From Octopus bimaculoides (lineage: Eukaryota), in NCBI RefSeq assembly GCF_001194135.2, contig NC_068984.1:76221112-76285111 (forward strand): a DNA stretch of 64,000 nt. Direction: 5' to 3'. Under the pieces are notes generated by a model. That model was not told where the DNA came from and did no database searches. It saw nothing but the letters and a program-made list of their open reading frames with translations. Made by a program: the position numbers and the translations under genes. This document shows positions 9,911 through 61,512 of this stretch, piece after piece (within the stretch, counting starts at the first letter, position 1; every line of letters begins with the position of its first letter).

Positions 9911-10265
9911 TGTATCCCACACAACCAAACACTACATACAATAATTTGTAGTCAGGTCTTTCAACTGAACCAAGCATGAGATGTCTAGTACCCTAGACTG
10001 TGGGTTGCTTTCGCAAATATTTAATAAGCTGTCTCAATCATAGAGCTATTTGGAATTGCCAGCAACAACACCAGCAATTAATATATGCATGTGCTTGTAA
10101 ACCTATCAAATTAATATTAGCACTCAAACATGTTAAAAGAAAAAAAAGTATGGTTGATCTTTTTCAATTTTATCAAATGTTATGAAAATAACATTAACAT
10201 GCTTAGGTCTTTTCTAAATTAAACCATTTAAAAGAATATTTAATTCCTCTTGCAGATCTGAAACC

Positions 10266-10447
10266 ATGGATACAAGTGTCCAACGCCGTCTAGTGCATCA
10301 GAATAGTGAAGGACAAGATGTTGAATCTGAGGATTCAGACGAAGAACAGAAATACCTCCAAGATCCTGGAGAATTTGCTTACAACAAAAGAGTGAGCGTA
10401 CCTGCCATTCCTGGTATGTTAATTGTCTTAGGACTTGTTGGAGAATT
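10266..10447 (+). CDS. NEF1-like: First coding exon (exon 10256-10447) of a polytopic membrane protein gene, NEF1-like
   Basis: Acceptor TTAATTCCTCTTGCAG|10256; Kozak-like AAACCATGG; open frame MDTSVQRRLVHQNSEGQDVESEDSDEEQKYLQDPGEFAYNKRVSVPAIPGMLIVLGLVGE; donor TT|GTAAGT at 10447/10448, where the frame closes and the sequence turns AT-rich; phase 2. The family call rests on my recall of the Arabidopsis NEF1 N-terminus. Confidence 0.85.
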
Positions 10448-11309
10448 GTAAGTACACTCATAATTTATTATTAATATTATATTTTTGGATTGTTTTCAGT
10501 GTTAGACTATTTCATCTTTTACAAGTCATGGGATGGAACTAAGCAATTGGCTCTGTAATTATTTTGTAGAGACAAGGAATATAATTTCTATTCGTGTATG
10601 GCTTATTTTGAGAAGGAAAGGGAAGAAAAAATTGTTATCCCTGGGTCAGTGCCATAAGAAGTAGCACGTTTGGATATTTTTTTACTTGCTGGGTTTGAAG
10701 GAAAGGAGCAGTGCCCATGACCTTTGGAAGCCCTACAAGGTCAGTGAGATTGATGCCATTAGTGTTCCTCTTGGACCTTTGTAGTCAATACCAGCCTCTA
10801 AGACATGAGCAAGTGGGGAATTCTGTAGGGCCAACATTCTGGAACGGAAGTTTGAGTATAGGCATAGAGATTTGTGTAGGGTCTGAAAGTTGAATACAGT
10901 AAGGTGTAAGTTGAGTAGGTCAAAAATACTTGAGTGGAAGTGGTTATGAGCCTGGACAGCTTCATGGAGCAAAGACCATTATAGCAGTAGTAGTAGAAAA
11001 GGCAGAAAGAGAAGTCTCTGCCTGTGGGCCAAAAGTTAAAGCATATTTGTGAGTTAGGTGGATTTTTTTAATTTTTATGTAATCTTGGATGCTGAGTGTG
11101 CAACTGCAGCATTGTCCTACATGTTATGTGCAATTAATACTCCATTGTAGATGTCACCTATTTTTTTTGTCAATTATCAATTATTGTTGGAGACTGGCTC
11201 TGAAAAGAAGGGCCAGTTTGGGCTGTGACATTGTGTTTTCTTCAGGAGACCTTGTTCAAATGCTTTAAACATAGTGGACTCCACTAAAAACATATTCTAT
11301 GTAATTGTG

Positions 11310-11543
11310 TTAACACTTTTGGAATCACCCCATCTGAGACTGTCCCCTGGCTCTATGATACAAACTTCCTGAGTTAACATGATCTAAATTAAAACCTTCT
11401 ATCAAAATTCTATGTTAATTTATATTCCAAACACGGGCTTAATAAGGACATAGTTTTTTGCATTAAATTCTTTGTTATAATCAAAACTGATTGAAACATA
11501 GGTTGTATGTCTCATCAGAAGTATGGTAACAAAAGGGCTTTAA
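11310..11543. mobile_element. piggyBac-type MITE, family B
   Basis: TTAACACTTTT...GGTAACAAAAGGGCTTTAA; the body is homologous to the two copies at 42251-42690. Confidence 0.7.
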
Positions 11544-12571
11544 CCAGGCACCAGATTAAGTCTACCACCAACATTTGATAAGATTCTGCACATTTTCTGT
11601 GATAAAAAACATTTTCTCAGGGTGCCATTGCATCAAACAGATGTTTTATAAATAATTTCTATTCTCTTTTCGCTGTTATTCAAATTTGTGAGCATCTAGT
11701 TCAAAAACATAATTCAAGTGACTTACAAAATTCATTGCAAAAATTATTAAAATGACAGGAATATGAGAGGTAAATAGCAAACAAAAACAAGTCAATATCC
11801 TTGAAGTGTAAATAACCCAAGATGGAAGTCAATTTAAATCACTCTTTAATTTAAATAATGTTCCACTACTAGGGATTGTGGGTTATAGAGGCATTTATAG
11901 CTGTAGCTAAGGTACCAAATTAGTAGGGTCTTTAGAGCATTGGATAAGATCCCTTGTGGTATTTGTTCCAATATCCTATACTCTGAGTTCAAATCTTCCC
12001 ATGTTTACCTCTGACATCATCTTTTCAAGGCTGATAAATAAGTAACAGTCTAGGATTGTGGATTGGTGGATTTGTTAGTATGTTGGATGGGATCTCTTGT
12101 GATCTTACCTGCTTTGTTACTTTGCTTTCTGATAAAGACAGTGTCTGCAACATCAACACCACTGGTGCAAAACTATGTCAGTCCTGCTTTTCCTTTGGAT
12201 AGTATTGGTATATTGGAGTGGAGGAGATTTGCATGCATAGGCAATTGCAAATCATCCAGAAAAAAAAAAACCTTGTTCTACTCTTTGATTGGTTTCCAGG
12301 AGTTTATTGAGACATACAGCAACAATACTCGGTAGTAAAATGTAGCATCACATAGAGATTCAACTATTTATATATTATTATCATTTAAAGTGATGGATTG
12401 GCAAAATTGTTAGAACTTCAAACAAATTGCCTTTCTGTATTTCATCCAGTTCTTTACATTCTGAGTTAAAATCTTGCTGAGGTCAAATTCACCATTCATC
12501 CTTTGGGGATTTATTAAATAAAATGCCAGTCAAATACTAGGGTTGATGTAATTGACTAACGTGCCATCCCC

Positions 12572-13090
12572 TAGGGCCAGATTAAGACTCACCGAGACCC
12601 TAATTACTTAAAAGATTTTGGTGCCCCCATAAAAGATTATGTAATTCAAAATATAAACAATAACAAACCATAAAATAAGTTTATATTTTTCAAAATGAAA
12701 CAAAACAGTAACAAGGAAAATAATGTTTATTTTTGTATACTTCCACTTTATTTATATTTCAAAAGTTTCCTTCTACTTTTTTGAATTGCAAAGTCTTTGA
12801 TCAGATCCTCAAAATTAATCTTAGATAACACATCTGCGTCTATGCTTAGTAGAGATAAAGGCATCCTGAATATTATTTTAGCAAGTTTAAAGTGATTTCT
12901 TTTGTGCCGTAAATCATTTACCATTTCTGTGGTTCCCTCTCCTTCCCTTGATGCCCTATGCACATGCTTATTTTGCTTAATGGTTAATCCAGCACTGCCA
13001 TTCCCTCTTAACACTGATAGCCTTGTGCCTAAATTAGAAATGATTATTTGAATGGATTTAAGGTGGTAGATTAGCAAAAACATTAGAACA
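12572..13090 (-). mobile_element. hAT transposon 3' end relic (C-terminal dimerisation region plus terminus)
   Basis: ORF 12748-13083 ends LSLLSIDADVLSKINFEDLIKDFAIQKSRR, matching the hAT C-terminal pattern. Terminus TAGGGCCAGATTAAG. A second copy lies at about 45880-46070. Confidence 0.7.
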
Positions 13091-14851
13091 TTGGGCCAAA
13101 TGCTTTGCTGTATTTCTTCAAGCTCTTCATCTTCTGTGTTCTAATCCTACCAGGGTCATCTTTGCCTTTCATCTCTCTTGGGTTGATAAACTAAAGTACA
13201 AGTCAAGTACTAAGTTCAACATTAAACACTCCTTCATCAACCCAAAAGGAATGGTGTATTTGACTTAAGCAAAACTAAGTTATGCCCTAAAAATTTCTGT
13301 CCTTATGTCTGTGTTAGAAACGGTGATTATTTACATAAAATTATTTTATTCTTCTCTTCACCAAAAGGTTATAGTTGCAATTAGCTTAGTAGGATTTCCA
13401 ATATTGTTACAAAGGCCACAATTTATGAGGAAGGCACAACTAATTAAATGGAACCAGTATCTAAGTTATTTTATCAGTTTTGTTGCACGTCTCTGCTCTG
13501 GTCATTAATACCAAACTCTGCTTTCTTATACTTCAGGCTGTTTTTATTTTTCATAGCTACAATGACTATTGCAATGCAATTGTTTTAGTCCCAACACATG
13601 ATCTCAGTTCAGTTCACTTACCAAATGAGCACAACTCAGATATTTAGCTATTTTCTTTTATACTCTTTATTTCTCAACATGAACTATTTTTTAATAAACT
13701 TAATGACTTGATACAAACTTCTACTTAAACAAAGCAATTCTTTAGATAATACATTTTAATATCCCACTCTGTCAAAATATTTCTTTCTTTTCAATAACAC
13801 AATTCAAGAAGCAGATGGTCATATTGTGATTTGTATTTTAGATGTCTATGAGACGCATTATTTTAGAAACAAATGAAATAGTATTTTTTCCCCCCACTGT
13901 CTACTTCACAATATGAACAGTCCTGAAATACAGCTGCATCACTTTCATTATTATAATCATCATCAACACAATATGACTGCTTAGGAATGTTTCTTTTCAA
14001 TTTCATTCCTGTTTCAGTAGGTTTGTTCATTTGTCATCGTTTGAACTATATGACATTGTGAACACTTCAAGACTGCATAATATTGTTTCCATTTGTATTT
14101 GGTGGTAATTTGTAGTGTTTTAGTAATCCCAATATTTCTAGCGGTAAACTTAACTTAGTGGAGTTCACTCTGTTGCAAGTATTCAGACCAGTATGAGATG
14201 TTTTAGCACAACTGTTATGGCTCCATCCATTTAGCATCACTGATTCAATATTGATTCATTTCACAGCTTACGTTTTAATCTCTCTCTTTCTGTTTACATG
14301 TATGAGCATATTTCTCCAAGTGTGTGTGTGTGTGTGTGTTTGCTTGCTTTCAGTGCCAAAAAGTACTGTTGTGAAAAAAAGGTTCAGTGTCCAGTCAGCC
14401 ATGCCAAATTGCCAGTATCCAAAGCAGCCATGCCCAGCCATCTCATTCTGCTGATCTGCTTGGTTCTTTTGACATAAACTATATCAGTTTCATTATACAC
14501 CTTCTCCTTTTACTAACTGTTGTGTTTCACTCATTTAGAAAATATATTGAATGTTCATAACCACAAGTTACACAACTCATTTCCTAGCATCATCCTCCCC
14601 GTGCATAGTAGTATCACCCCCTTTTCTGGCTGCCAGCACATTCATCTTTCATCTCATGAGTTCCACATGGTTGCACAAGACTTCTCTTGAGAGTTCTATA
14701 CATATACATATCAGAGTATCAAAATCAGCAACCCAATGCAACTCATATTATTCCTCTTCAAACATTTTAGCTTTTTACATCCTGCACTTCATCTCAGTTG
14801 AGGACTTGATGAAATTTTCATGTTTAATCTTCAACAGCACACCTAGCATTG

Positions 14852-15931
14852 TCAATAATACGCTGCCCCCACTTCTTCTATAACTCTGGTGTTGGTGTCG
14901 TGCCTAGTCTGGGGACTTGATATGGTCGCACCATCACTGTTAGGCATCCTTGCAAACTCAGCGTGAACCATTGTTCTAGGTGTTGTGCTCAATTTTGGTT
15001 CTGATTCCCATGTGTTTAGCAGGGCCAGTTGCTCAACTGCTACTAACTGCAGTGTGCAACCCTCCTTCTTAATCCATGCTGTATTCTTTCCAGCATGAAT
15101 CACATCTTTTGCTTTGGATGCAACTTTGTCGAATATGATTTTGTGTACTACATCCTCACCTATTTCAAAGAATGGGTTTACAGCAACCGTCAATGGTCTT
15201 TTCATTAACTTTTCGGATGGTGATAATTTATGACTACCCAAGGAACTCCAATGGTTGAACAGAATTTTGTTCAAGTAATTGCCAAAATTCCTTGTCTTCA
15301 AATCAAAATGATTCTGTACAGCTTCCACAGTTTGTACAGCCCTTTCAACAGTGCCATTAGATGCTGGACTGTGAACAGGTGTCTCAATTATTCTGCAACC
15401 TATTGATGACAACATATTCTTTGATGCAACAAATTCAGGCCCAATGTTCGATACTAAAGCTGTAGGCACACCATAACGAATGAAGACCTCAAGCAGCTTG
15501 CTTTTTACCACCTCAGTCAAGCAATTAAGATACAAGCGGGCTTCGATCAATGTTGAATAGGCATCTACAATTACAAGTATGTTACCAATGTTTGGAACAT
15601 ATGCCCAATTCATATGCACACATTCCCAGGGCCCAGAAATAGGCCATGAATCATTTGCGTTTACTAAATTTGGCCTAAATCTCTGGCAACTATCACAAGA
15701 TTTGACAAACTTCTCTGCCGAGTAAGCCAACTCAGGCCACCAAACACAGAGTCGTGCCTCCTTAATTGTTTGTTGAATGCCCATGTCTGTGTCATGTAGT
15801 TTAGTTATTACTGTGGCTCTATAAGGTGCTGGAATAAACAGACGATTTTTATGATATATTAAGCCATTTTCGCATGTTAGAAAATCCTTTGCTTTAACAA
15901 ATGCACTTCCCAGATTTAAGATCATCTCCAA
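14852..15931 (-). mobile_element. Gypsy/Ty3-type integrase ORF (359 codons), catalytically degenerate
   Basis: HHCC-like zinc finger LHDTDMG...WWP...CDSC; core motifs PWECVHMNW, LVIVDAYS, VSNIGPEF and SNGTVERAVQT; purine-rich PPT-like AGAAGAAGTGGGGCAG at the 3' end. No RT, RNase H or LTR pair is visible. Confidence 0.9.
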
Positions 15932-16277
15932 TTTTGCTGTAAATTCTTTCTTTTATTTTGTTATATAATGCATTTGCATTTACACTAATCCCTCACCATA
16001 TCGCGGTTTATTATTTAAGCTTACGTCGATCCTTTCATGGTGTTTGTTTTGCATTTATAATAAAATAAATATATACAGATTATAAAAATACAAAAAAAAT
16101 ATACAGTACTGTTTTTACTTCATGGATTTTCACCTATCACGGTGAGGTTTGGAATGTAACACCCACAATAGTCGAGGGATTACTATAGTTGTTTTTGAAT
16201 GCCTTCCATCATTACATGGTCAATGTCCTGCTACACACTGTTGCATTTGTCTAAATGCGAAGCAAAGAAAATTATAT

Positions 16278-16405
16278 CATCATCATCATCATCGTTTAAC
16301 GTCCGCTTTCCATGCTAGCATGGATTGGACGATTTGACTGAGGACTGATGAACCAGATGGCTAAACCAGGCTCCAATCTGATTTGGCAGTTTCTACAGCT
16401 GCACC
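16278..16405 (-). mobile_element. RTE-tail SINE-like repeat, truncated next to the Penelope-like element
   Basis: (CAT)n-CGTTTAACGTCCGCTTTCCATGCTAGCATGG..., near-identical to 61583-61730 and to the reverse complement of 28700-28830. Confidence 0.85.
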
Positions 16406-16474
16406 ATCGTTAATACAGTTCTATAATTAAGAGATTTGGTTTGACAGATATTTGTCCTCATCTTTTTTGTTCTT

Positions 16475-16517
16475 CACACGTTTCGGCTGATATACCCTCC
16501 AGCCTTCATCAGGTGTC
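16475..16517 (-). ncRNA. Minimal (Penelope-type) hammerhead ribozyme core, decayed copy
   Basis: GACAC-CUGAUGA-A-GGCUG(GAGGGUAUAU)CAGCC-GAAAC-GU-GUG. CUGAUGA 16506-16512, GAAAC 16480-16484, 5-bp stem II. The cleavage-site nucleotide appears deleted. Confidence 0.75.
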
Positions 16518-16591
16518 TTGGGGAAATTTTGAACCTGGGTTCTCATTCCTAAGGTATTTTTTGATATTATTATTATTATTATTATTATTCA

Positions 16592-16665
16592 GGTCACTGC
16601 CTGGAATCGAACTCGGAATCTTGGGGTTAGTAGCCTGCGCTCTTAACCACTACGCCATATGCCCA
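16592..16665 (-). promoter_or_regulatory. tRNA-like segment with Pol III A and B boxes inside the Penelope-like 3' region
   Basis: GGGCATATGGCGTAGTGGTTAAGAGCGCAGGCTACTAACCCCAAGATTCCGAGTTCGATTCCAGGCAGTGACC. A-box 16647-16657, B-box 16603-16614. The stems pair poorly, so it is not called a tRNA gene. Confidence 0.75.
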
Positions 16666-18335
16666 TGGGCATTTATAGAGTGAATTTTAGGGCTTATAAA
16701 TCTAATATTTTCCTATCCTTCCTTAATACCGGTTCTCATATGCTATTTGTATCTGCACTCGGTCGGCTTAGGAGGTTGTTGTGTCCTAGCATATGTGCTA
16801 CTTCTTTTAGTTTTCGTATTTTCCAGTGGTGTTCTCTGTCTATTATTTTAACTTCATCCCACAGGGGGAGGGGGTCTCCATTTTTCCATATATGATCAGC
16901 TATACCTGATTTATCAATATCTCCTCGTGTCACAGCTTTGCGATGTTCCTCTGCCCATATTTTGAGGGGTTGGCATGTTTCGCCTCTGTACAACCAACCA
17001 CAGCTGCATGGGATGGAGTACACACAGTTTGATGCATTGTTGGGACTATAATGTCTATTGTTGAGAATGGACAACGAAAAATATTGTTGAAACTTTTTTC
17101 TTTTTTTCTAGAATACCTTCAGATGTTTTCCACTCTTAGAAATATAAGTTTGAGTTATAATCACTATGAATTACCAAATTAGTAATTTAATTAAGTTTTC
17201 AATTTATACATCTTTTGGGGACAAAAATGCAGTTTGGAAGTATAAAAGGTTCAGACTTCTAGAACAATTGCAAATCCTTGAACTATAGAAAGTATACCAG
17301 GAAACATCATTCACTCCCATTAAGTTATACACAGTTCCTACCATATATTTCATTTTTAAGAGTTGACTTGTTTAATTTATCTATTTACATTTAAAAGATT
17401 GGGTGGGGGTTGTAATAATGTTTTTGGATAAAGTTAGAACACAGATTAATGTCGTTTTTGTTTGTTTTTCTTTTTCCATTTTTTCATGTTCATATCACTT
17501 TCTAAAGACTTTAGATGAGAGTTTTCATAAAATGTTGTTCTAACAGAAATCTAATAGTTTGGATAATCATAATATTCTTTGAAAACTAAGTATTGGTTTC
17601 CAAATACTTAAAGTTTAAATAGCAGTGTTATTTTACATCCACTTTATTTACATTTTTTTAATATTCTCCCACTTTCTTCATATTTTCAAATAAATTTATT
17701 ATCTATCCACTCAAACACGAATAAAATCTAGTAATGTAACTTCTGTATTCAACAAGATTCGTTAAATTTATCTCAAATGATATATGTCTAAATTACCAAA
17801 TTAAAAAAAATTTTGAAAGTTATTTTCATGTTCATATTTCAAATCACCAGTAAAAGATGTTATGCAAATAAATTTAAAATTCCAATACTTAGAAATTAAT
17901 ATTTTTAGTTAAATTCCTTGAAATCTTCTTGGAAAGTAACTGTTATCTTGTCATAAAAATGTAGTTAGTTGATTCTGACCTCAATATCAATAACTTCAGT
18001 TTACTTATGTAAATTAGTTTTTAATATGATTTGGCTAATAAGTAGATTATTTTGTAATAAGTAAATTATTTTACAATTGCTTATGTATTCTTTTTTTTTT
18101 TTTTGTACTGTAAAGTATAACTTTTTTAGTTTATCTTCAGTCAGATAACTGCACTATGTTTGCTTTTTTTTTTTAGTAACAGAATTAATTATTAGTAATT
18201 TTTGGAACATCAGATAAATTGTCTCACAGTATTTATTTTGGTTCTTATATTCTGTATTCAAATCTTGCCTAAGTCAATTTTCCCTGTTATTCACTCTCCC
18301 AAATTTAAGATGTTGTGTCTATGTTACAAACATCA

Positions 18336-18545
18336 GTGAGCTGGCAGAACTGTTAGCATGCTGGGTAAAATGCTTAATGACATTTTACCCATCTGCATGT
18401 TCTGAGTTCAAATTCCACTGAGGTCAACTTTGCTTTTCATGCTTTCGAATTTGATAAGATAAGTACCAGTTGAACACTGGGGTCGATGTAAACAACTCAT
18501 CCCCTTCCCTGAAATGGCTGCCCTTGTGACAAAATTTGAAACCAC

Positions 18546-18593
<48 letters not shown>

Positions 18594-19411
18594 TTTTACT
18601 ATTATTATTCAGGCGGCAAACTGGCAGAATTGTTAGCACACTGGGCAAAATGCTTGGCAGTATTTTGTCTACCACTATGTTCTCAGTTCAAATTCCTCCA
18701 AGGTCAACTTTGCCTTTCATCCTTTTGAGGTTGATAAAATAAGGACTTGTGAAACACTGGGGTCAATGTAATCAATTAGTCCCCTCCTACCAAATTCAAG
18801 GCCTTGTGCCTCCAGTAAAAAAGGATTATTATTATTATTATTATTATTATTATTTCTAATTTAAGGTGGCGAGCTGGCAGAATCATTCATTAGTGCACTG
18901 GGCAAAATGCTTAGTGGCATTTTGTCCATCCTTACATTCTGAGTTCAAATTCTGATGAGGTTGACTTTGCCTTTCATCCTTTCAGGATCAATAAAATGAG
19001 TACCAGTTGAGCACTGGGGTTAATGTAATCAACTAGACCCCTCCCACAAAATTTCAGGGCTTGTGCCTATAGTAGAAAGGATTATTATTATTTCTAATTT
19101 AAACACGTGGCCAAAAGTTTGGAGAGGAAGGAGTTAGTCGATTACATCAGCCTCAATACTTGAATGCTACTTTATTTTATCACCCTCAAAAGGATGAAAA
19201 GTGAAGTTGATTTTGGTGGGATTTGAACTCCAAACATTAACAGTCAGAAGAAATATCACAAACTTTGTCTGGCACTCTAATAGTTCTACCAGTCTACTAC
19301 CCTATAATGATATTTCTAACTTAGACATGAGGTCTGTAGTTCTGAAAGTTGAGTCTTAGATGATTTATTCAGCCCCAGTACTAAACACTGATACTTTATT
19401 TTATTGATCCC

Positions 19412-19459
<48 letters not shown>

Positions 19460-19665
19460 CCTTTCTACTAAAGGCATAAGGCTTGAAATTTGTAGGGATG
19501 GGACTAGTCGATTACATTAACCCCAGTGTTTCATTGGTACTCAATTTATCAATCCTGAAAGGATGAAAGGCAAAGTCGACCTCGACAGAATTTAAACTCA
19601 GAACATAGTGATGGGCAAAATATTGCTAAGCATATCAGTCAGCATGCTAATGATTTTGCAAGCCC
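18336..19665. mobile_element. Cluster of six SINEs (GGCGAGCTGGCAGAA...GAGTTCAAATTCC family): three forward, three reverse, separated by (ATT)n/(AAT)n
   Basis: Forward copies at about 18336-18546, 18610-18826 and 18861-19080; reverse copies at about 19105-19290, 19300-19410 (partial) and 19459-19665. Other copies at about 8480, 11930, 12390, 22620, 27190, 43155, 43532(-), 44280(-) and 51705. Confidence 0.85.
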
Positions 19666-20899
19666 ACAATAGAAATAAGAAGACTAGAAGAAATCATAAT
19701 ATGGTATTTGTAGCAAACTTTAAAAAACTGGGTAGAACAGACACTTGTCATACTGTCCAGAACTAAATTTCAGTGAAATTTAGTTCTGGATATTCTGCTC
19801 TTTTATTTATTACTAGCACTACCATTTTAAAGAAGATTAAATCTTTGGATCAACCTTCCTGATAGTTATGTCTGTCGATTTCTCCATATGTTACTCTTAT
19901 CTGCAATTAAGTTTTCAGAATATAAAGATAACATCATTACTGGTGAGTAGTGCCAGTCATTATCAACAGACCACTTTTCATTGTTACCATGTTAAAGAAC
20001 AAACCAACCAGACCACATTTATTACACATACCTTCTTCTCTTGCATCATTTCCTTTCTCTCTCTCTCTCTCTTTGTCTGTTTCTCTCTCTCTCTCCTGCA
20101 GACACACAATGTAAACTCTATAAAGATGAAAATACACTGTTTATGATATGTTAGGTGTTAAGATTATTGATGTAATATAAATTGTATTAAATTCACATGA
20201 AGTTATATGCACAAATGTATGCATCATAATTGTTTTAACGCCTATTTTTTTTGTATATTGATATCTGTTAGACATAATATCAATTTCATATGGAAAAAAT
20301 GTTCACACACAAACACACACAGAGTACAACATTTTTATATGTATCTCAGTTTTTTACCCTAAGGCTTAATATTACTCAATCATATCTAACTACTTACTAA
20401 CTCTTTCTTAGTTTGTCTTGACTACAAGTATCTGTCCCTGCCACCACCACCATCACTATATCATCACATCTCATTAATCAAATCTATTTGATTCTTGGTC
20501 TCTTACTCCACTCATTTCTGCTCAGATTTTCTGTTTGGTCATACTGTTCATCAAGTATCAAATGTATATTGGCAAAAGATGTAAATATCAACAAAGAAAT
20601 TGAAAAAAAAACTGGTGCTTTGGAGTAGAATTCTTTGTATTTTGATCCACTTGAGTTGCACAGACAAACCCGTCATTCTTGGCATGTTATAAGAAATGAG
20701 TTGCTCATTGGAAATGTATAACAAACATTATTGTTAACCAAATGTGATATAAAATTAAGAAGAATGAGAAAGAACTCATGGTGTCCCAAAGCAGTTAAGT
20801 ATCTTCTACATACTTTCTGTCCCATTATTGGATATATTGTATAAAACTAGCTGTCAGTACTCTTTCTTCCAGTGAGTTATATGAATGGGGGTCTTTATT

Positions 20900-22470
20900 T
20901 ATTTCAAAGCTACTCACACTTCTTAGCTCTCCAAATTTTTTGATGTAGGCAATGCTTGTGAAACCTGTCTTTTCACATCTTCTGATCTATTTGCAACTAT
21001 ACTACCAAGAAACTGAAACTCTCTTACATGTTCTACTTTTGAAACATCTCACTGGATAATTTCATTGTTATGTGAGTGGATCTTGCATTTCACACTATTT
21101 ATTTTCACATTTCAGTTTTCACTGACTTTGTCTAACTGTTTGCTGAACACTTTCAAGTTGTCAAAGACCATGAATATTAGGGTTATGTCATCAGTATGTC
21201 CACTGTTTATGGATAAGGAGTCAGTAAGTGCTAGATTGTTATCTGGGTCTAAAGTTCCCTCATGTTTAAGATGTTGAAAAGTGTGGCAGAGGCATGCAAT
21301 TATGTCTCACACAAATGCATGCATCAAATGAATCCATCAACTGACCATTCTTGATCAGTCTCACTTAGTACCTATATTATTTGCACTATCTTGGGGTTCT
21401 ACACTTATTGTTGTTGTCATTTTCTATAAGGTCTTCCTCAAGATCATGTTGAAGCTTTAAAGATAATGAAGTTGAAATGTAAAGACACTTGATGTTCTCT
21501 TACTCTTTCAATGATCTGTTTGACTTTAGAAATGGCATTGAAAGTGCCTCCTCCACTTAGTCTGAAACCTAACTGATTCTTCCCCATTGCTTCTTCTGTT
21601 TTACTTTTTATTCAGTCAGGGAGGATTCTACAGAACACTTTTTCTAGTATTGATAAGAGAGGGATCGCCTTGTAGTTCTCTGGATTTTACATGTCACTCT
21701 TTTTATATGTTGGAGTTACTGGTATATGGTTCCAACCTTTTACTGTCTTTTCTGTTTTCCAAACTATATTGAATATTACATAGAACATGTTAATCATGTG
21801 CTCACCTCCTGCTTTTAGTACTTCATCACTGATGGCATCTATTCTAGGGACTTCATGGTTTTTCATTCTTTTTATTGCTTTTTTCTATTTCATATTTTGT
21901 TATTTCTGTGCAAGTATCTACATCAGATGAACCATCCAGGATTTCTGATATTGCCTCTTCATTGTGTAGCAATTGAGTGTTAAAATGTTGTACAAAATTA
22001 TCTTTCCATTATTGGAAAACTGCAGCTGTGTATGTACGTATGTTACATTCTTTATTTTTGATTGTGCTGTATGTTTTCTGCTCTTTCCCTCCATTTCATA
22101 AATGGACTTGAAAACATTGTGACTGTTATTGTTCTTGAAATTGCCTTCTAGTAGTTTTGTTTTGTCATGTAGGTTCTTGTTCTTTTGTATTTTGACTTCT
22201 GTTTTGACTGCTTTGTTCGTATGAGTTGTTCAATGTTCCTGTTCTGGTTTTTCACCTTTATTCACAGTCTGCCACTGTTTCTTATGAGAGCCCTGTCATT
22301 TTCCTTTTTTCCTTTTTTTTTTTTTTTTTTTTTGTTCCTAAGCTTCCACGTGGACAGTCTCTACTGTTATTTCATGTTTTTCCTTTGAAATACGCATACA
22401 CCTTGCCTATTGTCATCTGTTTTGAGCACGTTAGGAGGTGCAGTGCAAGATGTAATGGGTTAGGAGGTTC
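20900..22470 (-). mobile_element. Degraded RTE-clade LINE, reverse transcriptase region
   Basis: Manual minus-strand translation gives TKYEIEKAIKRMKNHEVPRIDAISDEVLKAGG, NYKAISLLSILEKVF, GFRLSGG..FNAISKVKQIIERVREH and a HTDD RT-like motif; many stops and frameshifts. Confidence 0.8.
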
Positions 22471-45835: not shown

Positions 45836-45873
<38 letters not shown>

Positions 45874-45879
45874 TATATA

Positions 45880-46070: not shown

Positions 46071-46104
46071 TCAAAACCTCAAACTTATATTTCCAATCAT
46101 ATAA

Positions 46105-50400: not shown

Positions 50401-53400
50401 ACACTGTTCTTTATCTTTTGATTAAAGCTGTTAAAAAGGAAAATGGAGTTAGCAATTTTCTGAACAGCAGAAACCACTGAAGTTTAAAAAAAAAACAAGA
50501 GAAAAACTCTCTCTTGGTATTTTTTTTTTATATTGTCAGTAAAAGTGTAATTGTTTTTGTTTTTAGACATGGAGTGAAAAGAAAAGGAAAGGAAACCAAA
50601 AGAAGTACAAATAAAACAATAAATAATCTAAGAGAATTTCTCAATCTGTAATTTTGTTTTTGCAAAGTATTTGGAAAATAATTTCATCTGAGATCATAAT
50701 CACATGTTGAAGCTAAAAACTGTTTACATTGTAGTGATGTTATATTGGCCATTGAAGCACATACGCACTCACATACATATGTTAATTTTTTTGTTTTATG
50801 ATATTTTTGTAATAGTATATATTGAGAGGTTTACTTTTCAACCGTCTGATTTTAAACTGGGTTCCACTGCAAGGTACCTTGGGCAAGAGTCTTCTACTAT
50901 AGCCACTGGTTAACCAATTGCTTTGTGAGTTGAATTTGGTTGACAGAAATCATCTGAAACCTATTGTGTGTGTATGTATGTGTGTGAGTGAATGTTTATT
51001 CTGCACTCACATTTAAACAGCACTGAGTTATAAATGGCTAACTTTATTGATCCTCACCATCATCATCTTCATCGTCATCACCGTTTAACGTCTGCTTACC
51101 ATGCTAGCATGGGTTGGACGATTTGACTGAGGGCTGGTGAACCGGATGGCTCTCTGCTTTCAAAGATGTATGAAATATAAAAATAATAATCCCTTACTGT
51201 TAGCATCAAAAAGGGTATCCAGCTGTAAACCAACAACTCAAAATTATGTACTGCTCTAACTCCTGCTAACTTGGGAAAATGGACATAAAAATGAATGGAG
51301 TAAAGTTATAAAGTGTCAGTCTTTTGTCACAAATTCCACTGACAGTATTTTATCATTTTCTATACATGGTGTGTGGTATTTGTTTTTATCTTTCCTGCAA
51401 AGTTTTCATGAAGGAAAAATTACTTTGATTATCCTAAATTAATTAGGAAATCTAATTATTAAAGTCTTTTGTCACTGACTCTGGTAAGGAATACAAGTTG
51501 TTGTTTAAATGGAAGATTTGCTATTTCAACTTTATGCTTTATGTTCTGTGTTCATATCCTACTGAGTCATATGTGTGTTTCATCCCTTTGGTATCTAAAA
51601 AATAATGTACCAGTCAGGTACTGGTGTCACCAGTATCCAACTAACCTCTCCCCTCAAAATTGCTGGCTATGTCCCTAAATTAGAAACAATTATTATTATC
51701 ATATTGTAAGGTGGTGAGGTGAGCTGGCAGAATTGTTAGCACACCAGACAAAATGCGTTGTGGCATTTCGTTCCCCTTTTTATATTCTGATTCAAATTCC
51801 ACTGAGCTTAAGCTTGCCTTTCATTCTTTTGAGTCAGTGAAATAAGTACCAGTTGAGTACTAGGGTTGACATAATCAACTTATCCTCCAAAATTGCAGGC
51901 CTTATGCCAACAGTACAAAGGATTATTATCATTTCGTATTCTACTTTATATTATGTGTCATGTGATAACTACCAAAACTTTCTTCCCCCCCCCTCTCTCT
52001 GGTATGCTTCCTAACCATGTGGTCTCATATTCAATTCCACTGTACACCTTGGACAAGTCTTCTACTATAACCCCAGGCTGACCAAAGCCTTGTGAGCGGA
52101 CTTGTTAGATGAAAACTGAAAGAAGCCCACCATATATGTACATGTATTCATTGGTCTGTATTTATGTGTACCCTTGTCTTGACAACATGTGATGAATGTA
52201 AATGAGTATCACCATCAGGCAACCAATATTGTTTGTTTCCATGAAACATTTTTTTCTTCCGTGAAAAACATGTTAGTCCAGGGAAATATTACTTTGCTTG
52301 GAAGCAGGTGAGGATTGATGACAGGAAGGGCATCAGGTTGTAGAAAATCTACCTCAACAAATTCTATCTGATCCATGCAAACATGGACATTAAACGATGA
52401 TGATATATATATATACCCCATTCCTCACTCACTGATGGTCACTTATGCAAGCATCCAAACCTTGAATTAGTCATGCTGCCTATAAGTTTCTTCTAGAGAC
52501 TTGGTTACTAAATCACATTAAAACATAACACACTCTAATGTAAGCTTTTAAACCAACTCTGTGACTTGAGGCTGACTTAAATGATCTGACTTATTCATGA
52601 CTCTCTAAAGAAGACAAAAAAAACAGCATTAATAAACTGGTCAAGCAGACTAATGGTGAAAGGCATTCTAGTCATAACCATACTCTCCCCCCCCTCCCCT
52701 GAGTTATGTTGGGTTATATTATTTAACTCTCTTGCTACAGAAATCAGATATTTCCACTAAAATTTCATTACTCTTAACGGCAGGAAACAGTTTTATATAC
52801 CAATCTATGTTTTGTGGAGGAATGTCATGTTTAAATCTACTTTTTGTTGGGATATGTCAAATTGTCAAGTTGGAATATGTCAAGACCACATGACTTGCTG
52901 AAAATACCAGTTTTTTTTTTTGTTTGTTTTTGTTGTTTTTTTTTTGTAGATATATATATATATATATATTTAACAACATTAATGGAATAACCATGAACTT
53001 TAATTTTGTGGTAAAAAGGTCAGTATGTCCTTTCTAAGACAGTGAAGTGCAGTTTGAAAGAAATTGGGCTGCTATTTCTAGCAGGTCAAGCAATCATATA
53101 GAGGCTCGTTCTGAGGCAGATTCAGTTAGCAATATCTCCCACTAACAAATTTGTTGCCTTGAGTCAGTGTGAGAAATCAGTATCAGTGAAGCATGTCATT
53201 TTATTTTCCTATATGAATTCTTCATCAAGCAGACAGAAACAAGTTTAGTAATTTTCCTTACATGGTGGCACAGGACAATGTCTGTGACCAGGTTTAAAAT
53301 CATGACCCTGTGCTCAGTATTTCATCTTTTAAAACTTAACAGCTGTAGCCCAAGGATAAAAGACGAAAGATTAGAGAGAAAATAGATATTCCAGTATTTC

Positions 53401-53842
53401 TGAATCTTTTTAAAGAAAGCAATTATAGAAATAAATTATCGATGTTGTTTCTGCTTGCTGATTTTCCTCTCAGTTATGCGTATATTCAAATGTTTAATTG
53501 CATTTGTTTGTAGATGCAGGAGTATGTGTGTATGTGCATATGTATGTCTGTCTGTCTTTCTGTCTATCTATCTATATTGTGCTTGCAAGTGTGTATATAT
53601 CTGTACATACAGATATGTGCTCATATATATATATACATGTGTATGTTTAATTTTATGTAAAATTATATAGTAAAAAAGTTCAAACATTAAATTGAAAGAA
53701 CACGCAATGCTTTTTAGTAGAGTTCCATATTTATCAATTTTACAAGGAAAACAGTGACTTCAAAGTTTTGGCTTTGTAAACATCATCCGACTGACTACTT
53801 ATAAGTGAAACTTTAAGATTACTGGCATGTATATACATTTGC

Positions 53843-53876
<34 letters not shown>

Positions 53877-55259
53877 GTATATATATATATATANNNNNNN
53901 NNNNNNNNNNNNNNNNNNNNNNNNNNNNNNNNNNNNNNNNNNNNNNNNNNNNNNNNNNNNNNNNNNNNNNNNNNNNNNNNNNNNNNNNNNNNNNNNNNNN
54001 NNNNNNNNNNNNNNNNNNNNNNNNNNNNNNNNNNNNNNNNNNNNNNNNNNNNNNNNNNNNNNNNNNNNNNNNNNNNNNNNNNNNNNNNNNNNNNNNNNNN
54101 NNNNNNNNNNNNNNNNNNNNNNNNNNNNNNNNNNNNNNNNNNNNNNNNNNNNNNNNNNNNNNNNNNNNNNNNNNNNNNNNNNNNNNNNNNNNNNNNNNNN
54201 NNNNNNNNNNNNNNNNNNNNNNNNNNNNNNNNNNNNNNNNNNNNNNNNNNNNNNNNNNNNNNNNNNNNNNNNNNNNNNNNNNNNNNNNNNNNNNNNNNNN
54301 NNNNNNNNNNNNNNNNNNNNNNNNNNNNNNNNNNNNNNNNNNNNNNNNNNNNNNNNNNNNNNNNNNNNNNNNNNTTCTGTTCATCTGGGACCCCTGTATC
54401 TCAGTCTACATTTGCTTTACATAAACATATTATACTTGTTTGGAATCAGGATGATCCCAGGATTGAAAATCTGCCTCTCGTTTGGTTCTTGGGCATCCAG
54501 CATTGGGATCTGATTTAAAAGCCTTTGGGTTGCTATTTCTAGTAGGTAAATAAATCTTGGCCGATTCACGCCATCTTGGATGGCATTTGTCAGATGACAT
54601 CAAAGATCAAGGGGGAGATAAATGACATTTGTTTTGTTAATTTGACGTTGAGATAAGAACTTTGGGACAAATTGGCCAACAGTTGGAATTCAACTTGGGA
54701 CTGGAACGATAGAATGATTGCATTACAGAATTAATTCTCATCTGTCCTTAACCTCTGATCGAACACCACCAGGGCATATAGTCAGTAGAGACATATTATA
54801 GTCATGCTATTTAGCTCTTTTAAGTTTTGGGTCACAAGCCGAATTAGCCTTCCACAGGAGCTAGCTTAGAAATCTGCACAGAGTGTGGCTTTTAAGCTAG
54901 TATATAATATATGTATAATACGTGTGTATGTGCATGTCTGTGTATTTATACGTATACACACACATATATATCATCATCATCATTTAAGCGGACGTTAAAC
55001 AGTTGATGATGATGTGTGTGTGTATGCATATATATNNNNNNNNNNTATATATATAACATACTGTGAATAAATACTTTGTTGTGGCGTGGAAAATTATTCT
55101 ATTATGCAATACAAATTGAAAAGATATTTCCATAGAAATATTGAAGTATCAAGCTTAGTGTGATTGATTAACAAGTTACTATCCTGCCGCGTGTTGTAAC
55201 CCCAAAATAGTATAACTGCCACTTCTAAGGTTTGTTTTTAATTTTTTGATTTATTTTAG

Positions 55260-55790
55260 AGGAATATTTTCACAATCATTTTATTTTGCAATAAGAGAAA
55301 GGTTGTTTCGTTGGTAGAATTTTGAAAAGTGTTCAATTATAGAAAATGTGATTGAAAATATCCAGTAATCATAAGGAAACAGTAACACCATATGACATGA
55401 GATCTGATTGGAGCATTTTACCTCATTGTGCTAATGATTCTGTTGATCTTACCCAACATGAAGAAATTAATGGAACAATAGCTAACAATGGAAAGAGGGC
55501 TTGGTTTCAACAGAATACCTGATAAATATGTTCGTGATTTACTTGAATCACGTTTGAAAGAATTAACTGATTGAGACATTCTTAATTTGGCTCTACAGCA
55601 TGTATGTAAAGAAGTATATAGTCAAGAATCGATCAAAATGAACTACACATGAAAGCAATAGCTGGAATTTAGTTTCGTTAAATGTGTTGCAGATTTGAAG
55701 ATTTCAAACCATTAATAACAGATTTTAATTCTCACTTCATGTCAAACATGTAATTTCAACAAAACTGGACATAAAATTTTGCAGCTACAG
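55260..55790 (+). pseudogene. Decayed coding-like segment bounded by splice signals; origin unidentified
   Basis: TTATTTTAG|55260 and CAG|GTATGC at 55790/55791. Broken frames read SNHKETVTPYDMRSDWSILPHCANDSVDLTQHEEING and RIPDKYVRDLLESRLKELTD*DILNLALQHVCKE. Confidence 0.35.
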
Positions 55791-55860
55791 GTATGCATGT
55801 AGCCACAGATGCATGCAGTGAAAGAGAGGAAGAGATAAAAATGTCATTTCAATGAATGGT

Positions 55861-55996
55861 TACTATATCTTCTGGCACATAAGTCAAATTTTTCAGATCA
55901 AAATTTACGGCCAAAAATGGTAGGTCAAAGAAAAAGCTCTGGTGGGACAGTTATTTGGGAGAAAGTGGGTTGACTTATATAATGAGTATAGATTTA
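55861..55996. mobile_element. Degenerate pogo/Tigger-type MITE
   Basis: Termini TACTATAT...CATAAGTCAA and GGGTTGACTTATAT..GAGTATAGATTTA resemble the pogo-type TATAAGTCGA/TCGACTTATA ends. Confidence 0.45.
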
Positions 55997-57384
55997 AACT
56001 TTGATTTTCATTTTTTTAATTAATTTTTTTTTACTGAAAAATCTACCTTGATTTGTCTGCCAGAAAGTATGGTATTTCATCTCAGAAATAAAATTGTAAA
56101 TATATATTATTTAGCTACTATTTATTGTATGTGTGTGTACACTGCAGTAAAATGTAATGTAAAATTTATCATAAACTGTTGAATAATATGCACACATTTC
56201 CATTATCTTATGTTATTATATTATTTTCAAATATGGTTTAAAAAAACTGTTTTGGAAATTGTTGAACTTTTCTGTATTGCTTTCATGTCATTATATTCAG
56301 TTGCTCAGTTTCAATTAGTACAGTAATTTCATGGATGAATTAACCAGGTTAATCATGATTTTACTCTGCATGCTTGCATGTGTATGTGCATGTAGGCACA
56401 GACAAGGCTGTGTGGTTAAAAGTTTGCTTCTGAACCACATGGTTTCAAGTTCAGTCTTCCTGCATGACACCTTGGGGAAGTGTCTTCTACAGTAGTTCCA
56501 GGCCAACTAAAGCATTGTGAGTGGATTTGGTTGACACAAATGGAAAGAGAAGTTCTGTTGTATGTGTGTGTGTAAATGTATGTATGTATTTGTACATGTG
56601 TTCTTTGTTTTGACGTCACATGCTAGTTGTAAATGTTGTCACATTTAAGTAGTGTTGTTCATTTCCAATTTGCTGTGGAAACATGTCTGGCCAAGGAAGC
56701 AGGTGAAATTACCTTGCTTGAACATAGGTGAGGGTTGGTGACATGAAAGAAATCTGCTTCAATGAATTCTATCTGACCCATGAAGCATGGAAAACTGGAT
56801 GTTAAAACAATGGTGGTGGTGATATATACACACCAACACATATATGTGCACATACTCTCTCTCTTTTGCATGAGGCTTGTTCTGAAAGAAACTGAACTTT
56901 TAAAACAGCTTGCAACCAGCTGGCACTGCTATTAAATGAAATGTCAAGGGCACTTACATTTCAGTGCTGTGCATAAGTAACCTTCACCTTTAGTCTAATA
57001 ATGGCTACATCGTCCCATGTCAGTTAGTTATTGATCTATGTATCCTTGAGACAATTTAGTAGAACAATGAACAATTTGAAATAGCAATGTGCTCATGTGA
57101 AATTCTGCTTCAATTTGAGAAAAACTTAAATAAATACTTATTAAATTTTGCTACAGGTCCACTGAAAGGATTATTTGAGTTCTGTAATTTCTCACAAGTA
57201 AAAAAAAAAAAATAAATAAAATAAAATTAAACTTTTTCAAATTGAGAAGAACATCCACTGAAGATGATCCCAAATCTTTCCACAGCAAAGAATAATGATC
57301 ACTTTATGAAAATGTCTACTGTAATCCTTGAAAATCATCCTTATTTGTCTTTGAAATTTCTAAAGTCTTTTTAATTCCTTTGAC

Positions 57385-57525
57385 TCCATGTGGTGTATAG
57401 GTCACCAGCTTGAGATCTCCATTTGGCTTCATTTTTGACAATGGATTCTAGTTGTCCCCAGGCATAACCTCCTGCCAGTGCTTCAGTTTCTGTGGACCTT
57501 CTTCATGTTGTTTTTGAAGTAGGCA
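57385..57525 (-). mobile_element. RTE LINE extreme C-terminal relic
   Basis: KTT*RRSTETEALAGGYAWGQLESIVKNEAKWRSQAGDLYTTWSQRN*. Confidence 0.65.
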
Positions 57526-57589
57526 TCTGTAAAAGTTTGTTGTAAGATTTTATAAGAAAAATTGACAATGCATCATTTTGCTACAAAAT

Positions 57590-58035
57590 TTAGACTGTGT
57601 CTACTAACAGATGAACAAAGAGGAACACCAACTCACAGTCAGTCAAGAGGTGTTTGATTGTTCAAATGCTGGTAAAAGGTTTGTGAAAATGTCATAAGAG
57701 ATGACAAAACGTGTGTAGCTATGATGTCAAAACAAAAGGCTGTCATTGGTAAAGCATGGAACAACTCTTGTCTCTTCAGTTGCCCTACTCTTTGAGTTTG
57801 ACTTTTGAGGGGTTTTTTTCTCCCAGAGTTGAAATCCACTTTGAAAGATATGATTTCAAATGATAGAATACATCAAAACAAATTTTTTATAGGAATTGCA
57901 GACTACTTCTGAAACGTGTTCTTGAGAGCGGTGTGATAATAATGTAAGGAATTATTTTAAGGAGATCAAGTCTGATTAAAAGAATAAATTTGTATTTTAA
58001 AAAGTTTGATTTTTGTTTTTGGCTTGGTCTCATAC
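57590..58035 (+). mobile_element. Internally deleted mariner transposase relic
   Basis: LLTDEQ...SQEVFDCSNAG..NVIRDDKTC..YDVKTK matches the mariner ITGDETW.YGYD.ETK pattern. It is followed by a PYS...FFLPELKSTLK-like segment and a TIR-like GGTCTCATACTTTTG. Confidence 0.7.
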
Positions 58036-58299
58036 TTTTGCTTATTTTTTGTCTTCAGAATTTTTCTGTGGAAGAGTGTTCTGTTTTTAAGATATAAACG
58101 CAGAATGTTTTTAAAGGAGATTTTTGTTTCTTACCATTTCTTGTCTTCTGATTGGTAGTTAATTCATTAGAATTTTCAAGTATTAAATTTCTTTTTTCAC
58201 TTTCTAGAAAGCAAGAAGAAAATGAAAAATACATATTGTTTCTGCTAATTTTTACTTAAAATCTATAATGAAAATATTTTGGTTTATATTATTGTTGCT

Positions 58300-59050
58300 G
58301 TTGTCATCATCATCATCCTCTTCAGTGTCCGTCCCACTTCAGCAATTTCTGATGCCAGTGGCACTGAAAAAGAAACAACTTTGTCTTTACTTCTATGAAC
58401 TATTCTTAGAGATGGAACCATTAGTGCTGTGAGAACATTGACAGCTTCAGATATGGTCTTCACCATATATGCTTGCTAGTGTTGCCATCTCTGCTGTTAT
58501 TAGCAACCTTCCTTATTTTCCCTTCCCTCTTCTTTTGGACAGAAAGTCCTCAAGCAACCTTTCTAACTAAGCATATTAGTAGCTTTCTTTCTGTTCTGCA
58601 TCTCTAATTTGATCAATCTTTCGTCCACACCCACTGAGCTTTAACTCTAGGATAGACTTGAGATCTCCAAGGCTCATCAATGCTTGAAGGTCTAGTCTGA
58701 CCTGTTGTTGCAGATTATTTCCATGCTTACTACTTGTCTGAATTCTGCTGCAAAGGTGATGCCAAACTAAGAGTCAGTATCAGTACTAATATCTCTGGCC
58801 AAGTCTTTAATATTCCTTTTTCTCATCTACTGCATTCACAACCTGTGAGCAGGTTTGTGGCACACCAGCTCTGCCTGTCTCCTTACCTTATTCTCAGGTT
58901 GATAAAGAGACACATACTTTCATATGTTCTTACCATTTGAGGGGGCATGCATCCAATTTCACATTAATTGGGGATCCTTTGAACTCCACTTTGAAGGGTA
59001 TATGGAAATCCCTAGTCATTATCGCTTCACTCTTATCTCCTTTTTCTATT
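58300..59050 (-). mobile_element. Degraded RTE LINE C-terminal region
   Basis: EKGILKTWPE...QKKREGK*GRLL, resembling the RTE 'RRMLKIPW...GKRKRGRPR' region; many disruptions. Confidence 0.5.
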
Positions 59051-60699
59051 TTGTTTTGAACTGAATAGTATCAGAGAGTTTCTTATAACCCACAACATTA
59101 GCAAATGATAAAATTGTGCAGTAGCAGTGCAATTGTGGTGATTAGTCCTAGATTCAGTGGGTCTGATAAAATATGAGATGGTTACAGTTAGAAGACCTTT
59201 CATTCAAACTGTACTGGAGACTTGATAACTTTAACACTGTGAGTTTGGCCTGCTAATAGGGCATATTTACATATAAAAAAATCTAGTTCATTGGAAATTG
59301 TCTTTAGTAGGGACTTCCCACTTTGTTATTAATAAAGTTCTGCATCTTTTAAAACAAATAATCATAATATATTGAAAAATATTTCTTCTCTGAAATGTGT
59401 TAAGCAACTAACTGCCAAAATCTGATCACAAAATGTTATATCTCATCAATATAGCAGTGATTGTTGTTGTGGTTGTTGTTTTTATGTCTCTTCTCAGCAT
59501 TTCTTAATTCCTGCATCCATTGTGTTCTCAGTAAGTCTGATTGACAATAGGTTCCACTCTTACTTCATGACTGAACAGTTTCCAAGTAAAAAGACATCAA
59601 TATAAAGTGAAAAAAAAAAAAAAAAGGGGAGAAAAAGATCAAGCAGAAATATGTTCAGCAAGCAGCCCACTCTCCTATTGTGTTATATTCTTGGAAGCAA
59701 CATTCGATCTAATATTTAACTAAAATGTTAATGGAAATTAANNNNNNNNNNNNNNNNNNNNNNNNNNNNNNNNNNNNNNNNNNNNNNNNNNNNNNNNNNN
59801 NNNNNNNNNNNNNNNNNNNNNNNNNNNNNNNNNNNNNNNNNNNNNNNNNNNNNNNNNNNNNNNNNNNNNNNNNNNNNNNNNNNNNNNNNNNNNNNNNNNN
59901 NNNNNNNNNNNNNNNNNNNNNNNNNNNNNNNNNNNNNNNNNNNNNNNNNNNNNNNNNNNNNNNNNNNNNNNNNNNNNNNNNNNNNNNNNNNNNNNNNNNN
60001 NNTATATATATATATATATATTGCCAACAGCTCCATAAAGAAGTGCTGATCTCCCAAAGTGGATTGGACACATGGGCACTAAACTCTGCTTGCGAAGACC
60101 TGTTGGGGCAAGTTAAATCGTAATCGTAATTGAACCAAATTCGATGACTCTGAACACAAAGTGCTAGCACAAATATTGAAAGTTATTTGTTTGACATTTT
60201 AACAATCTACCAGTATACATAGGTTTAGATAAGCAAATGAGAGTAAAGAAGTGAATGCACATAGTGGTTTATATATTCAGTCACCACTTAGAATTTTTCA
60301 CTATATGTGATCCTCAACTGAGAAATATATGGACAGGGAAACTTGAATGAGAATATCTTGTTACCTGACTAGAGCTAACCAGAAAAAGACAATGCCCTTT
60401 CATACGTTTATTTAGTGAGCACCCAAGTTCTTTTATTGTTTATTTTTGTTTGTTTGTTTTTTGTTGTTGTTTTTTTTTTTGTCCTGAAGGATCACGTGTT
60501 GATATGTAAGACATAAAGAATGATGTTAACACTGCACATCAGTACCACTCTTATATATAAATGTTCAATTTTTTAAACTGTAAATTGGGTGACATGCTGG
60601 ATAAATGAGAAAAGTAGACTTTTGTCTTCAGTTCGTCATCTGTTTTATTAAGAATTTACATAGAACACAACTTTTCCAAGAAAAGAAAACAAAGTGACA

Positions 60700-61130
60700 T
60701 TGGAGAGTTCTGTTCATTGTGGGAAAATGTGTGTTTAAGGAAAAATAAGAATATGCCTGTAAAAGTGGTGAGTGTAATGTTGGTGTAGATACGTCTTTTT
60801 ACAACAGAGCATTTTGACAATCACAACTCTGGAAACTCTGCCAAATGGAAGAATTTTGTAGCTGTCTTGCTTTGCTGCTCATATCACTAAGTTTCTGACA
60901 TTCAGACTTTCTGTCAGGTTCTCTGTATTTTGTCTTCAGACATGATTTCTTTTATTATGCTCCAGAACAAATTTGATTGGGCAGATCTATGTTGAATATA
61001 TTTCTTGTTGGCCAGATTTTTGCTGATGCCACTATTCAATTTTAAAGATTCTTTTTGTGTTTATGAAAACCTTCTAATGGAAAAGATGACAGTTGGCATT
61101 CAAACTGAAGTAGAGACCTACATTTTCAAG
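60700..61130 (-). mobile_element. piggyBac transposase C-terminal relic
   Basis: VASAKIWPTRNIFNIDL and WSIIKEIMSEDKIQR resemble piggyBac 'KAASRRWP..VFYNILDLA..NAWILYKE..G.KISR'. Confidence 0.45.
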
Positions 61131-61443
61131 AAAATTGTAAAGAGTAAACAATTTATTCTGAAATTGTCATCAGAGTAACGTGCCTAAATGTACTAAAGAA
61201 ATAAAATAGGTGTAAAGTAGTCAAAAATATGTTTAAATGGATCAAACAGATAAAATAAATGTATTAGAATAAATAAAAATCAATTTGGTGTCAATACTGG
61301 TTTCAAATAGAGACAGCATTATTTCTCTTGATCTCTTTCTTCATTGTCATCTTCATCTTTATTTTTGTTATTATCTATTTCATCTTTTTCATTGGTATTG
61401 CCTTCATCATCATTGTCTCATTTTCATTCTCTCTCTGTTGCAG

Positions 61444-61512
61444 GTTGTTATGCTTTGTCAGCATTGGTGCTGTCGTTACTTTTCTGTTGGATTACCTGGG
61501 TGAAAAGAAAAG
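61444..61512 (+). CDS. NEF1-like: Second coding exon (69 nt, phase 2-2) of the NEF1-like gene
   Basis: Long pyrimidine tract TCATTTTCATTCTCTCTCTGTTGCAG|, donor AAG|GTAAGG at 61512/61513; encodes (L)LLCFVSIGAVVTFLLDYLGEKK(R/S). No further compatible exon was found before 64000. Confidence 0.8.

Follow-up and report, generated by a model that had tools for sequence, protein, structure and literature searches.

A probable animal orthologue of plant NO EXINE FORMATION 1, with its first two coding exons 51 kb apart, in Octopus bimaculoides

The 64,000-nucleotide stretch of the Octopus bimaculoides assembly GCF_001194135.2 analysed here (contig NC_068984.1, positions 76,221,112 to 76,285,111, referred to as the window) contains two short coding exons, at 10256-10447 and 61444-61512 on the forward strand, which are the 5' end of an ordinary nuclear gene, LOC106878824 in O. 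bimaculoides and LOC115211136 in Octopus sinensis. The encoded protein is, with a probability of about 0.88, the vertically inherited animal orthologue of plant NO EXINE FORMATION 1 (NEF1). The two RefSeq loci represent the same gene, and their entries carry neither a family name nor a function.

Coding exon 1 (10256-10447, +) is preceded by the acceptor ttgcag and followed by the donor gtaagt. Its ATG is located at 10266, with 10256-10265 as 5' untranslated region (UTR), and it is the first coding exon but not the first exon of the transcript; a 5'UTR exon was sought with the UTR of a relative and the upstream genomic DNA and was not found. The exon encodes residues 1-61, comprising an acidic disordered tail, a DPGxF-x-Y-N-x-R motif and predicted membrane helix 1. 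Exon 2 (61444-61512, +; 69 nt), flanked by a polypyrimidine tract with tgttgcag and by the donor gtaagg, contributes residues 62-84, namely LLCFVSIGAVVTFLLDYLGEKK together with the first two nucleotides of an Arg codon, and provides predicted membrane helix 2. The phase-2 intron between them (10448-61443, +; 50,996 nt as assembled) splits codon 61 (GAA TT/G TTG) and contains repeats and the remnant of a retroelement integrase. Exon 2 also ends in phase 2 (AAA AG/gtaagg), followed by the start of the next intron (61513-64000, +), which includes a gap at 62365-62530, and exon 3 (CVMVFVF...) lies beyond the window. The spliced frame of the two exons translates as MDTSVQRRLVHQNSEGQDVESEDSDEEQKYLQDPGEFAYNKRVSVPAIPGMLIVLGLVGELLLCFVSIGAVVTFLLDYLGEKK(R), a product that includes exactly the 47-residue peptide of an earlier reading made from the letters of the window (the sequence-only reading). 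A tblastn search with the full-length protein detected no part encoded between exons 1 and 2, and residues 85 onward gave no match to the whole window, so none of them is encoded in 61513-64000.

All 84 residues encoded in the window are 100% identical to two RefSeq models, the 932-aa 'uncharacterized protein' LOC115211136 of O. sinensis (P0005), a name also given to an Argonauta hians entry, and the 913-aa LOC106878824 product of O. bimaculoides (P0007). The 83-aa exon peptide retrieved only short relatives, one of them on the transcript contig L001, and the full-length relatives, which also include hypothetical proteins of a bivalve and a gastropod, were retrieved with the protein reconstructed from a cephalopod transcript. 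In the 3,058-nt transcript contig of another cephalopod (L001), exons 1 and 2 are contiguous and followed by an 838-codon frame, and the cephalopod transcripts L001 and P0004 both join the two exons with nothing between them. The match between L001 and the genomic sequence stops precisely at the two borders of exon 1, whose acceptor and donor are kept in a genomic contig of another cephalopod (L002). The bivalve Potamilus and the gastropod Batillaria have an intron after '...G-[DE]-' at the same codon position and in the same phase, and their short exon 2 shows the same borders and phases, so that both introns flanking exon 2 are conserved in position and phase.

Both exons and their join are confirmed as real. 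The sequence-only reading had described strong splice sites of matching phase on either side of an intron of about 51 kb and had named the 10447/61444 junction as the point to check; the sites are canonical, the join is in frame, the intron length stands as an approximate value owing to its gaps, and the junction was seen in the transcripts of a related cephalopod and in the RefSeq models. As the coding sequence in O. sinensis spans ~156 kb on a 164.8-Mb chromosome, an intron of 51 kb is in character for this gene. Two irregularities were observed among the comparison sequences. The O. bimaculoides model P0007 falls 19 residues short of its O. sinensis counterpart, and at residues ~188-232 the conserved stretch GFGLLQLFLVPTASSF... 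is replaced by an unrelated low-quality SYFILKLSYWGNFNLQKYK..., suggesting an exon that was mispredicted, perhaps because of a gap. The transcript contig L001 (from the Logan resource) has a 1-nt slip in a T-run at ~395-410 (TGTGTTTTTTTCAG), splitting the open reading frame (ORF) into 113 aa and 838 aa; the sister cluster P0004 is intact (932 aa), so the slip arose in assembly or sequencing and has no biological meaning.

The homology to plant NEF1 extends over the full length of the protein. A profile built from six mollusc proteins was searched with HMMER against 1.84 billion representative proteins, giving 325 matches at E<=1e-3 and 142 at E<=1e-10, including 'No exine formation 1' of Vanilla planifolia (E 1e-24) and Chara braunii (4.6e-22). 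Other distant full-length matches came from Chlorokybus (4e-27), Closterium, the CRuMs member Diphylleia rotans (1.6e-24) and the amoebozoan Luapelamoeba hula (4e-18). Among the matches listed, more than 100 angiosperm No exine formation 1 proteins show 63-81% identity to the Vanilla protein, so that the latter stands for the plant NEF1 orthologue group. When the mollusc alignment was compared by hhalign with one of streptophyte NEF1 proteins, the probability was 99.8% and the E-value 9.1e-29 over 854 colinear columns (query 41-932, template 55-1099), with DPGEFAYNKRVSVPAIPG... placed against SPSSFAHNARLAIALVPC..., the register that had been proposed earlier, and the FAYNKR segment paired with plant FAHNAR. 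Cotton, castor, sorghum, vanilla and charophyte NEF1 served as plant comparison sequences. Composition-adjusted BLASTP of the octopus protein against cotton NEF1 yielded an E-value of 2e-16 with 29% identity over 212 residues, starting from the segment encoded in the window, and a second colinear high-scoring segment pair at 1e-4.

The proposal of an animal NEF1 homologue in the sequence-only reading had started from 14 identities in 47 positions with a peptide given there as that of Arabidopsis. This count is correct, and the peptide so given agrees with actual NEF1 sequences of angiosperms in as many as 40 of 47 positions. The homology now has the support of the profile, hhalign and BLASTP values given above. 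Downstream exons had been expected to resemble NEF1, as borne out by the colinearity of the full-length protein with the plant sequences, and a next motif similar to G.W.TL had been anticipated, close to which G129-x-W-x-x-L-Q135-F136 was found. Assignment to another known family had been named as the opposite outcome; none claims the protein, the profile search returning 'No exine formation 1' proteins and the Pfam scan of the full-length cephalopod protein returning no family.

Across animal and non-animal members, 28 positions are conserved family-wide, four of which are encoded in the window, F37, P49 and G59 by exon 1 and G69 by exon 2. The positions of FAYNKR...P49...G59...G69 are kept in at least 18 of 21 animal and at least 26 of 33 non-animal members, and by strict pattern the N-terminal juxtamembrane F-x-[YH]-N-x-[RK] occurs in 35 of 54 members, across animals, plants and protists. 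The family-wide residues of the membrane core, in O. sinensis numbering E151, E415, K464, N766, D804 and P888 (of 'PLN'), are encoded outside the window. Among the universally conserved polar residues, E151, E415, K464 and N766 fall inside predicted membrane helices, and Q135 and D804 lie just beyond one.

Plant NEF1 and the animal protein share the F-x-Y/H-N-x-R motif followed by a P...G...G helical hairpin, the further motifs GxWxxLQF, ExxLF, SSF, GN(V/I)A, LLxQD and C-terminal PLN, and an overall character as polytopic proteins of ~1000 residues with no Pfam domain. They differ in that the animal and plant sequences are only about 17-21% identical and in that the animal protein is ~190 residues shorter, with an acidic tail where plants have a Ser/Pro-rich N-terminus. 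The gene structures are different as well: the first exon of Ricinus NEF1 covers residues 1-412, whereas residues 1-84 of the octopus protein are spread over two exons 51 kb apart, and no intron was found in the Ricinus NEF1 gene at the site of the octopus exon 1/2 intron.

An AlphaFold2 model calculated from the alignment of 54 sequences (mean predicted local distance difference test, pLDDT, 85.9; predicted template modelling score 0.74) is all-helical with 34 helices, 24 of which are clearly hydrophobic. The helices are mostly connected by loops of fewer than 10 residues, indicating that there is no soluble domain, and the 932-residue protein is accordingly modelled as almost entirely membrane-embedded, with at least 24 predicted membrane helices. 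Residues 1-28 are disordered (pLDDT below 50), helices 1 and 2 comprise residues 40-58 and 60-78, and the exon junction falls in the turn between these two helices of the first hairpin. The architecture on the plant side was deduced from the colinear alignment. Neither the mollusc profile nor the profile of 54 sequences matched any PDB sequence at E<=10, and Foldseek of the model against the PDB gave no significant match (best E 0.1, TM 0.13); the top Foldseek matches were soluble helical-repeat proteins and were set aside as meaningless. An internal repeat, sought by hhalign of sub-alignments, was not found. The octopus protein resembles MFS, RND, GT-C, ABC and LYCHOS/GPR155 proteins as a large multi-helix membrane protein, and has conserved intramembrane polar residues as secondary transporters do. 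It differs from MFS proteins, LeuT and channels with 24 transmembrane helices in having no detectable internal sequence repeat, and from MFS, RND, GT-C, ABC and LYCHOS/GPR155 in having no structural or PDB sequence match.

The closer profile matches, designated 'uncharacterized' or 'hypothetical', belong to gastropods and bivalves (Patella, Babylonia, Nucella, Mactra), annelids (Owenia, Capitella, Paralvinella), the brachiopod Lingula, the nemertean Tubulanus, echinoderms (Acanthaster, Anneissia, Lytechinus) and cnidarians (Oculina, Xenia, Paramuricea, Nematostella), so that the animal members among ~30 named matches come from marine invertebrate phyla only. No chordate, arthropod or nematode was present among the ~30 named matches, which fits a loss from model animals, an absence that is not thereby proved. 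One full-length member, from Mactra antiquata (KAL4233802.1, P0011), was apparently misannotated, its deposited name being 'Pleckstrin y domain-containing A member 1'.

Neighbour joining on a trimmed MAFFT alignment of 54 full-length members (21 animal, 33 non-animal), with 200 bootstraps, united the animals with the sequence P0052 at 100%, the molluscs at 100%, the cnidarians at 92%, the bilaterians at 79% and the land plants at 100%. The order within the animal clade, with cnidarians followed by echinoderms and then lophotrochozoans, is as expected, the streptophytes form a separate clade, and the animal clade is sister to the non-animal members instead of being nested in them. P0052 (1068 aa, Logan/ENA) joins the animal clade with a bootstrap value of 100% and is at times placed inside it; its source may be an animal that branched early or a unicellular organism closely related to animals, an origin that would help to date the family in Holozoa. 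The family is at least as old as the common ancestor of plants, Amoebozoa, CRuMs and animals, and the earlier description of a patchily retained ancient eukaryotic protein fits this distribution, which includes Amoebozoa, CRuMs and green algae.

Several alternatives to vertical orthology were weighed. Entry of the gene into animals or molluscs by horizontal transfer from a plant or alga, which the sequence-only reading had kept as its alternative, might be suggested by the description of NEF1 as a plant gene and the seemingly patchy animal distribution. The tree disfavours it: the animals form one clade (100% with P0052) that excludes all plant, algal and protist sequences, indicating vertical descent, and the order within this clade follows animal phylogeny. 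The identity to plants is only 15-18%, homologues are also present in Amoebozoa and CRuMs, and introns conserved in position and phase over three mollusc classes have no counterpart at the same site in Ricinus, which further disfavours transfer from plants, making it very improbable. An artefact, whether contamination, a scaffold mis-join across gaps or a chance similarity of hydrophobic sequence, has hardly any probability. Eight gaps separate the two exons, and the starting evidence consisted of 14 of 47 identities in a hydrophobic stretch; against this, chromosome-scale assemblies of O. sinensis, O. bimaculoides and Argonauta all carry a model of the gene, the two exons are joined in the cDNA of a relative and are free of N, and the homology is full-length and highly significant by composition-adjusted BLASTP and profile methods. 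Contamination, against which the sequence-only reading had cited spliceosomal introns and animal-type repeats, is excluded by these three octopod assemblies and the introns conserved among molluscs. The intron or its gaps could also conceal an extra coding exon or a different first coding exon, in which case the direct join would represent only one isoform; the 1,894 N in the intron and the visible misprediction of P0007 at ~188-232 speak for this. Across the junction, the proteins of Octopus, Argonauta, a decapodiform-like cDNA, a bivalve and a gastropod align colinearly, none of them lacking or gaining a residue, and such an exon is quite improbable.

It is also improbable that the animal proteins represent an ancient paralogue, i.e. 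a sister family already separate from NEF1 in the last eukaryotic common ancestor, for which the plant phenotype would be little informative. The low identity to plants (about 17-21%), the ~190 residues by which the animal proteins are shorter and the clustering of protist sequences closer to plants than to animals could be read in this way. The exhaustive search gave one family with no second animal group, no species was found with two copies, among plant and algal proteins none outscored the NEF1 group against the animal profile, and the alignment is colinear from end to end, with motifs shared from F-x-Y-N-x-R to the C-terminal P-L-N. Some points weigh against vertically inherited orthology as presented here. 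The tree was built by neighbour joining only, and the monophyly of the 21 animal sequences without P0052 has 46% support; the absence from vertebrates, arthropods and nematodes is deduced from only ~30 named matches and is not proved; the junction relies on RefSeq models and the transcripts of a relative; and the comparison used NEF1 proteins of charophytes and of angiosperms other than Arabidopsis.

The Arabidopsis nef1 mutant (gene At5g13390) provides the only functional datum for the family. In two papers, both of which report the phenotype from Ariizumi et al. 2004, the mutant is described as having less lipid and sterol ester in tapetal plastids, a defective primexine and no exine, and NEF1 as a plastid integral membrane, transporter-like protein predicted in silico (PMC12346373, PMC3220415). 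The octopus protein may tentatively be placed in a non-plastid membrane, with a transporter-like or lipid-handling role, a possible but doubtful assignment suggested by the polar residues conserved in predicted helices, the lack of a soluble catalytic domain and the nef1 phenotype. It depends on the phenotype of a plant mutant and on conserved intramembrane polar residues, which would be compatible with a channel, scramblase, membrane-embedded enzyme or scaffold as well. The window-encoded part comprises an acidic cytosolic tail, the juxtamembrane F-x-Y-N-x-R motif and the first helical hairpin.

Plastids are absent from octopus, amoebozoans and CRuMs, and the presence of orthologues in plastid-less animals and amoebae suggests that the ancestral role was not plastid-specific. 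The octopus makes neither pollen nor exine, and the plastid membrane location of NEF1 is itself only predicted. In a broader and unlikely scenario, the NEF1 family would date from the last eukaryotic common ancestor and consist of transporters or scramblases with at least 24 helices and an unseen fold, handling lipidic precursors for the building of resistant coats. Export would proceed out of an endomembrane or the plasma membrane, and plants would use it for the pollen exine, protists for the walls of cysts or spores and marine invertebrates for the envelopes of eggs or larvae. Loss from model lineages (vertebrates, insects, nematodes and yeast) would then account for the family being understudied.

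Regarding the remainder of the window, 12 runs of N are present, 8 of which (1,894 N) fall within the exon 1/2 intron, including 55036-55045 and 59742-60002, the latter 1.4 kb upstream of exon 2; the others are located at 1157-1166, 1630-2034, 3844-3853 and in the intron after exon 2. The gaps closest to the two exons are 13.7 kb past exon 1 and 1.4 kb ahead of exon 2. Since the exons lack N and all gaps are intronic, the reading frame is independent of them, and with 8 gaps inside the intron, only its length and the scaffold order are uncertain. TA, CA or TATC microsatellites stand beside most gaps of the window. An intronic ORF of 359 aa (14852-15931, -) contains a Pfam Integrase_H2C2 zinc-binding domain (E 6.7e-11), with the surrounding frames interrupted by many stop codons, and is probably the remnant of a retrotransposon of the long terminal repeat type. 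Just past the donor of exon 2, 61545-61700 contains a (TA)n run, a (CAT)n run and then gtttaacgtccgctttccatgctagcatgggttggac..., which may resemble an abundant octopus short interspersed element. An Rfam scan of the whole window gave no match.

In the literature mentioning 'no exine formation', which was searched for non-plant NEF1 homologues, only plants were found and no non-plant homologue. The octopus gene thus belongs to a new animal branch of a known, biochemically uncharacterised family and is not a new kind of system; its model already exists in RefSeq without a name, and the animal members are labelled 'uncharacterized' or 'hypothetical', with one apparently misnamed. The practical gain is modest, considering that the RefSeq model exists and that ordinary BLAST reaches the homology. 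The seeming lack of the protein in standard model animals would explain why it is still unnamed. The result is nevertheless solid and evolutionarily informative. For two decades NEF1 has passed as a 'novel plant protein' located in the plastid membrane, and the non-plant orthologues make the family older than plants, with a core function that is not plastid-specific. Animal biology gains a conserved membrane protein of ~930 residues without a solved structural relative, and the family is opened to study in tractable non-plant systems such as Nematostella and sea urchin.

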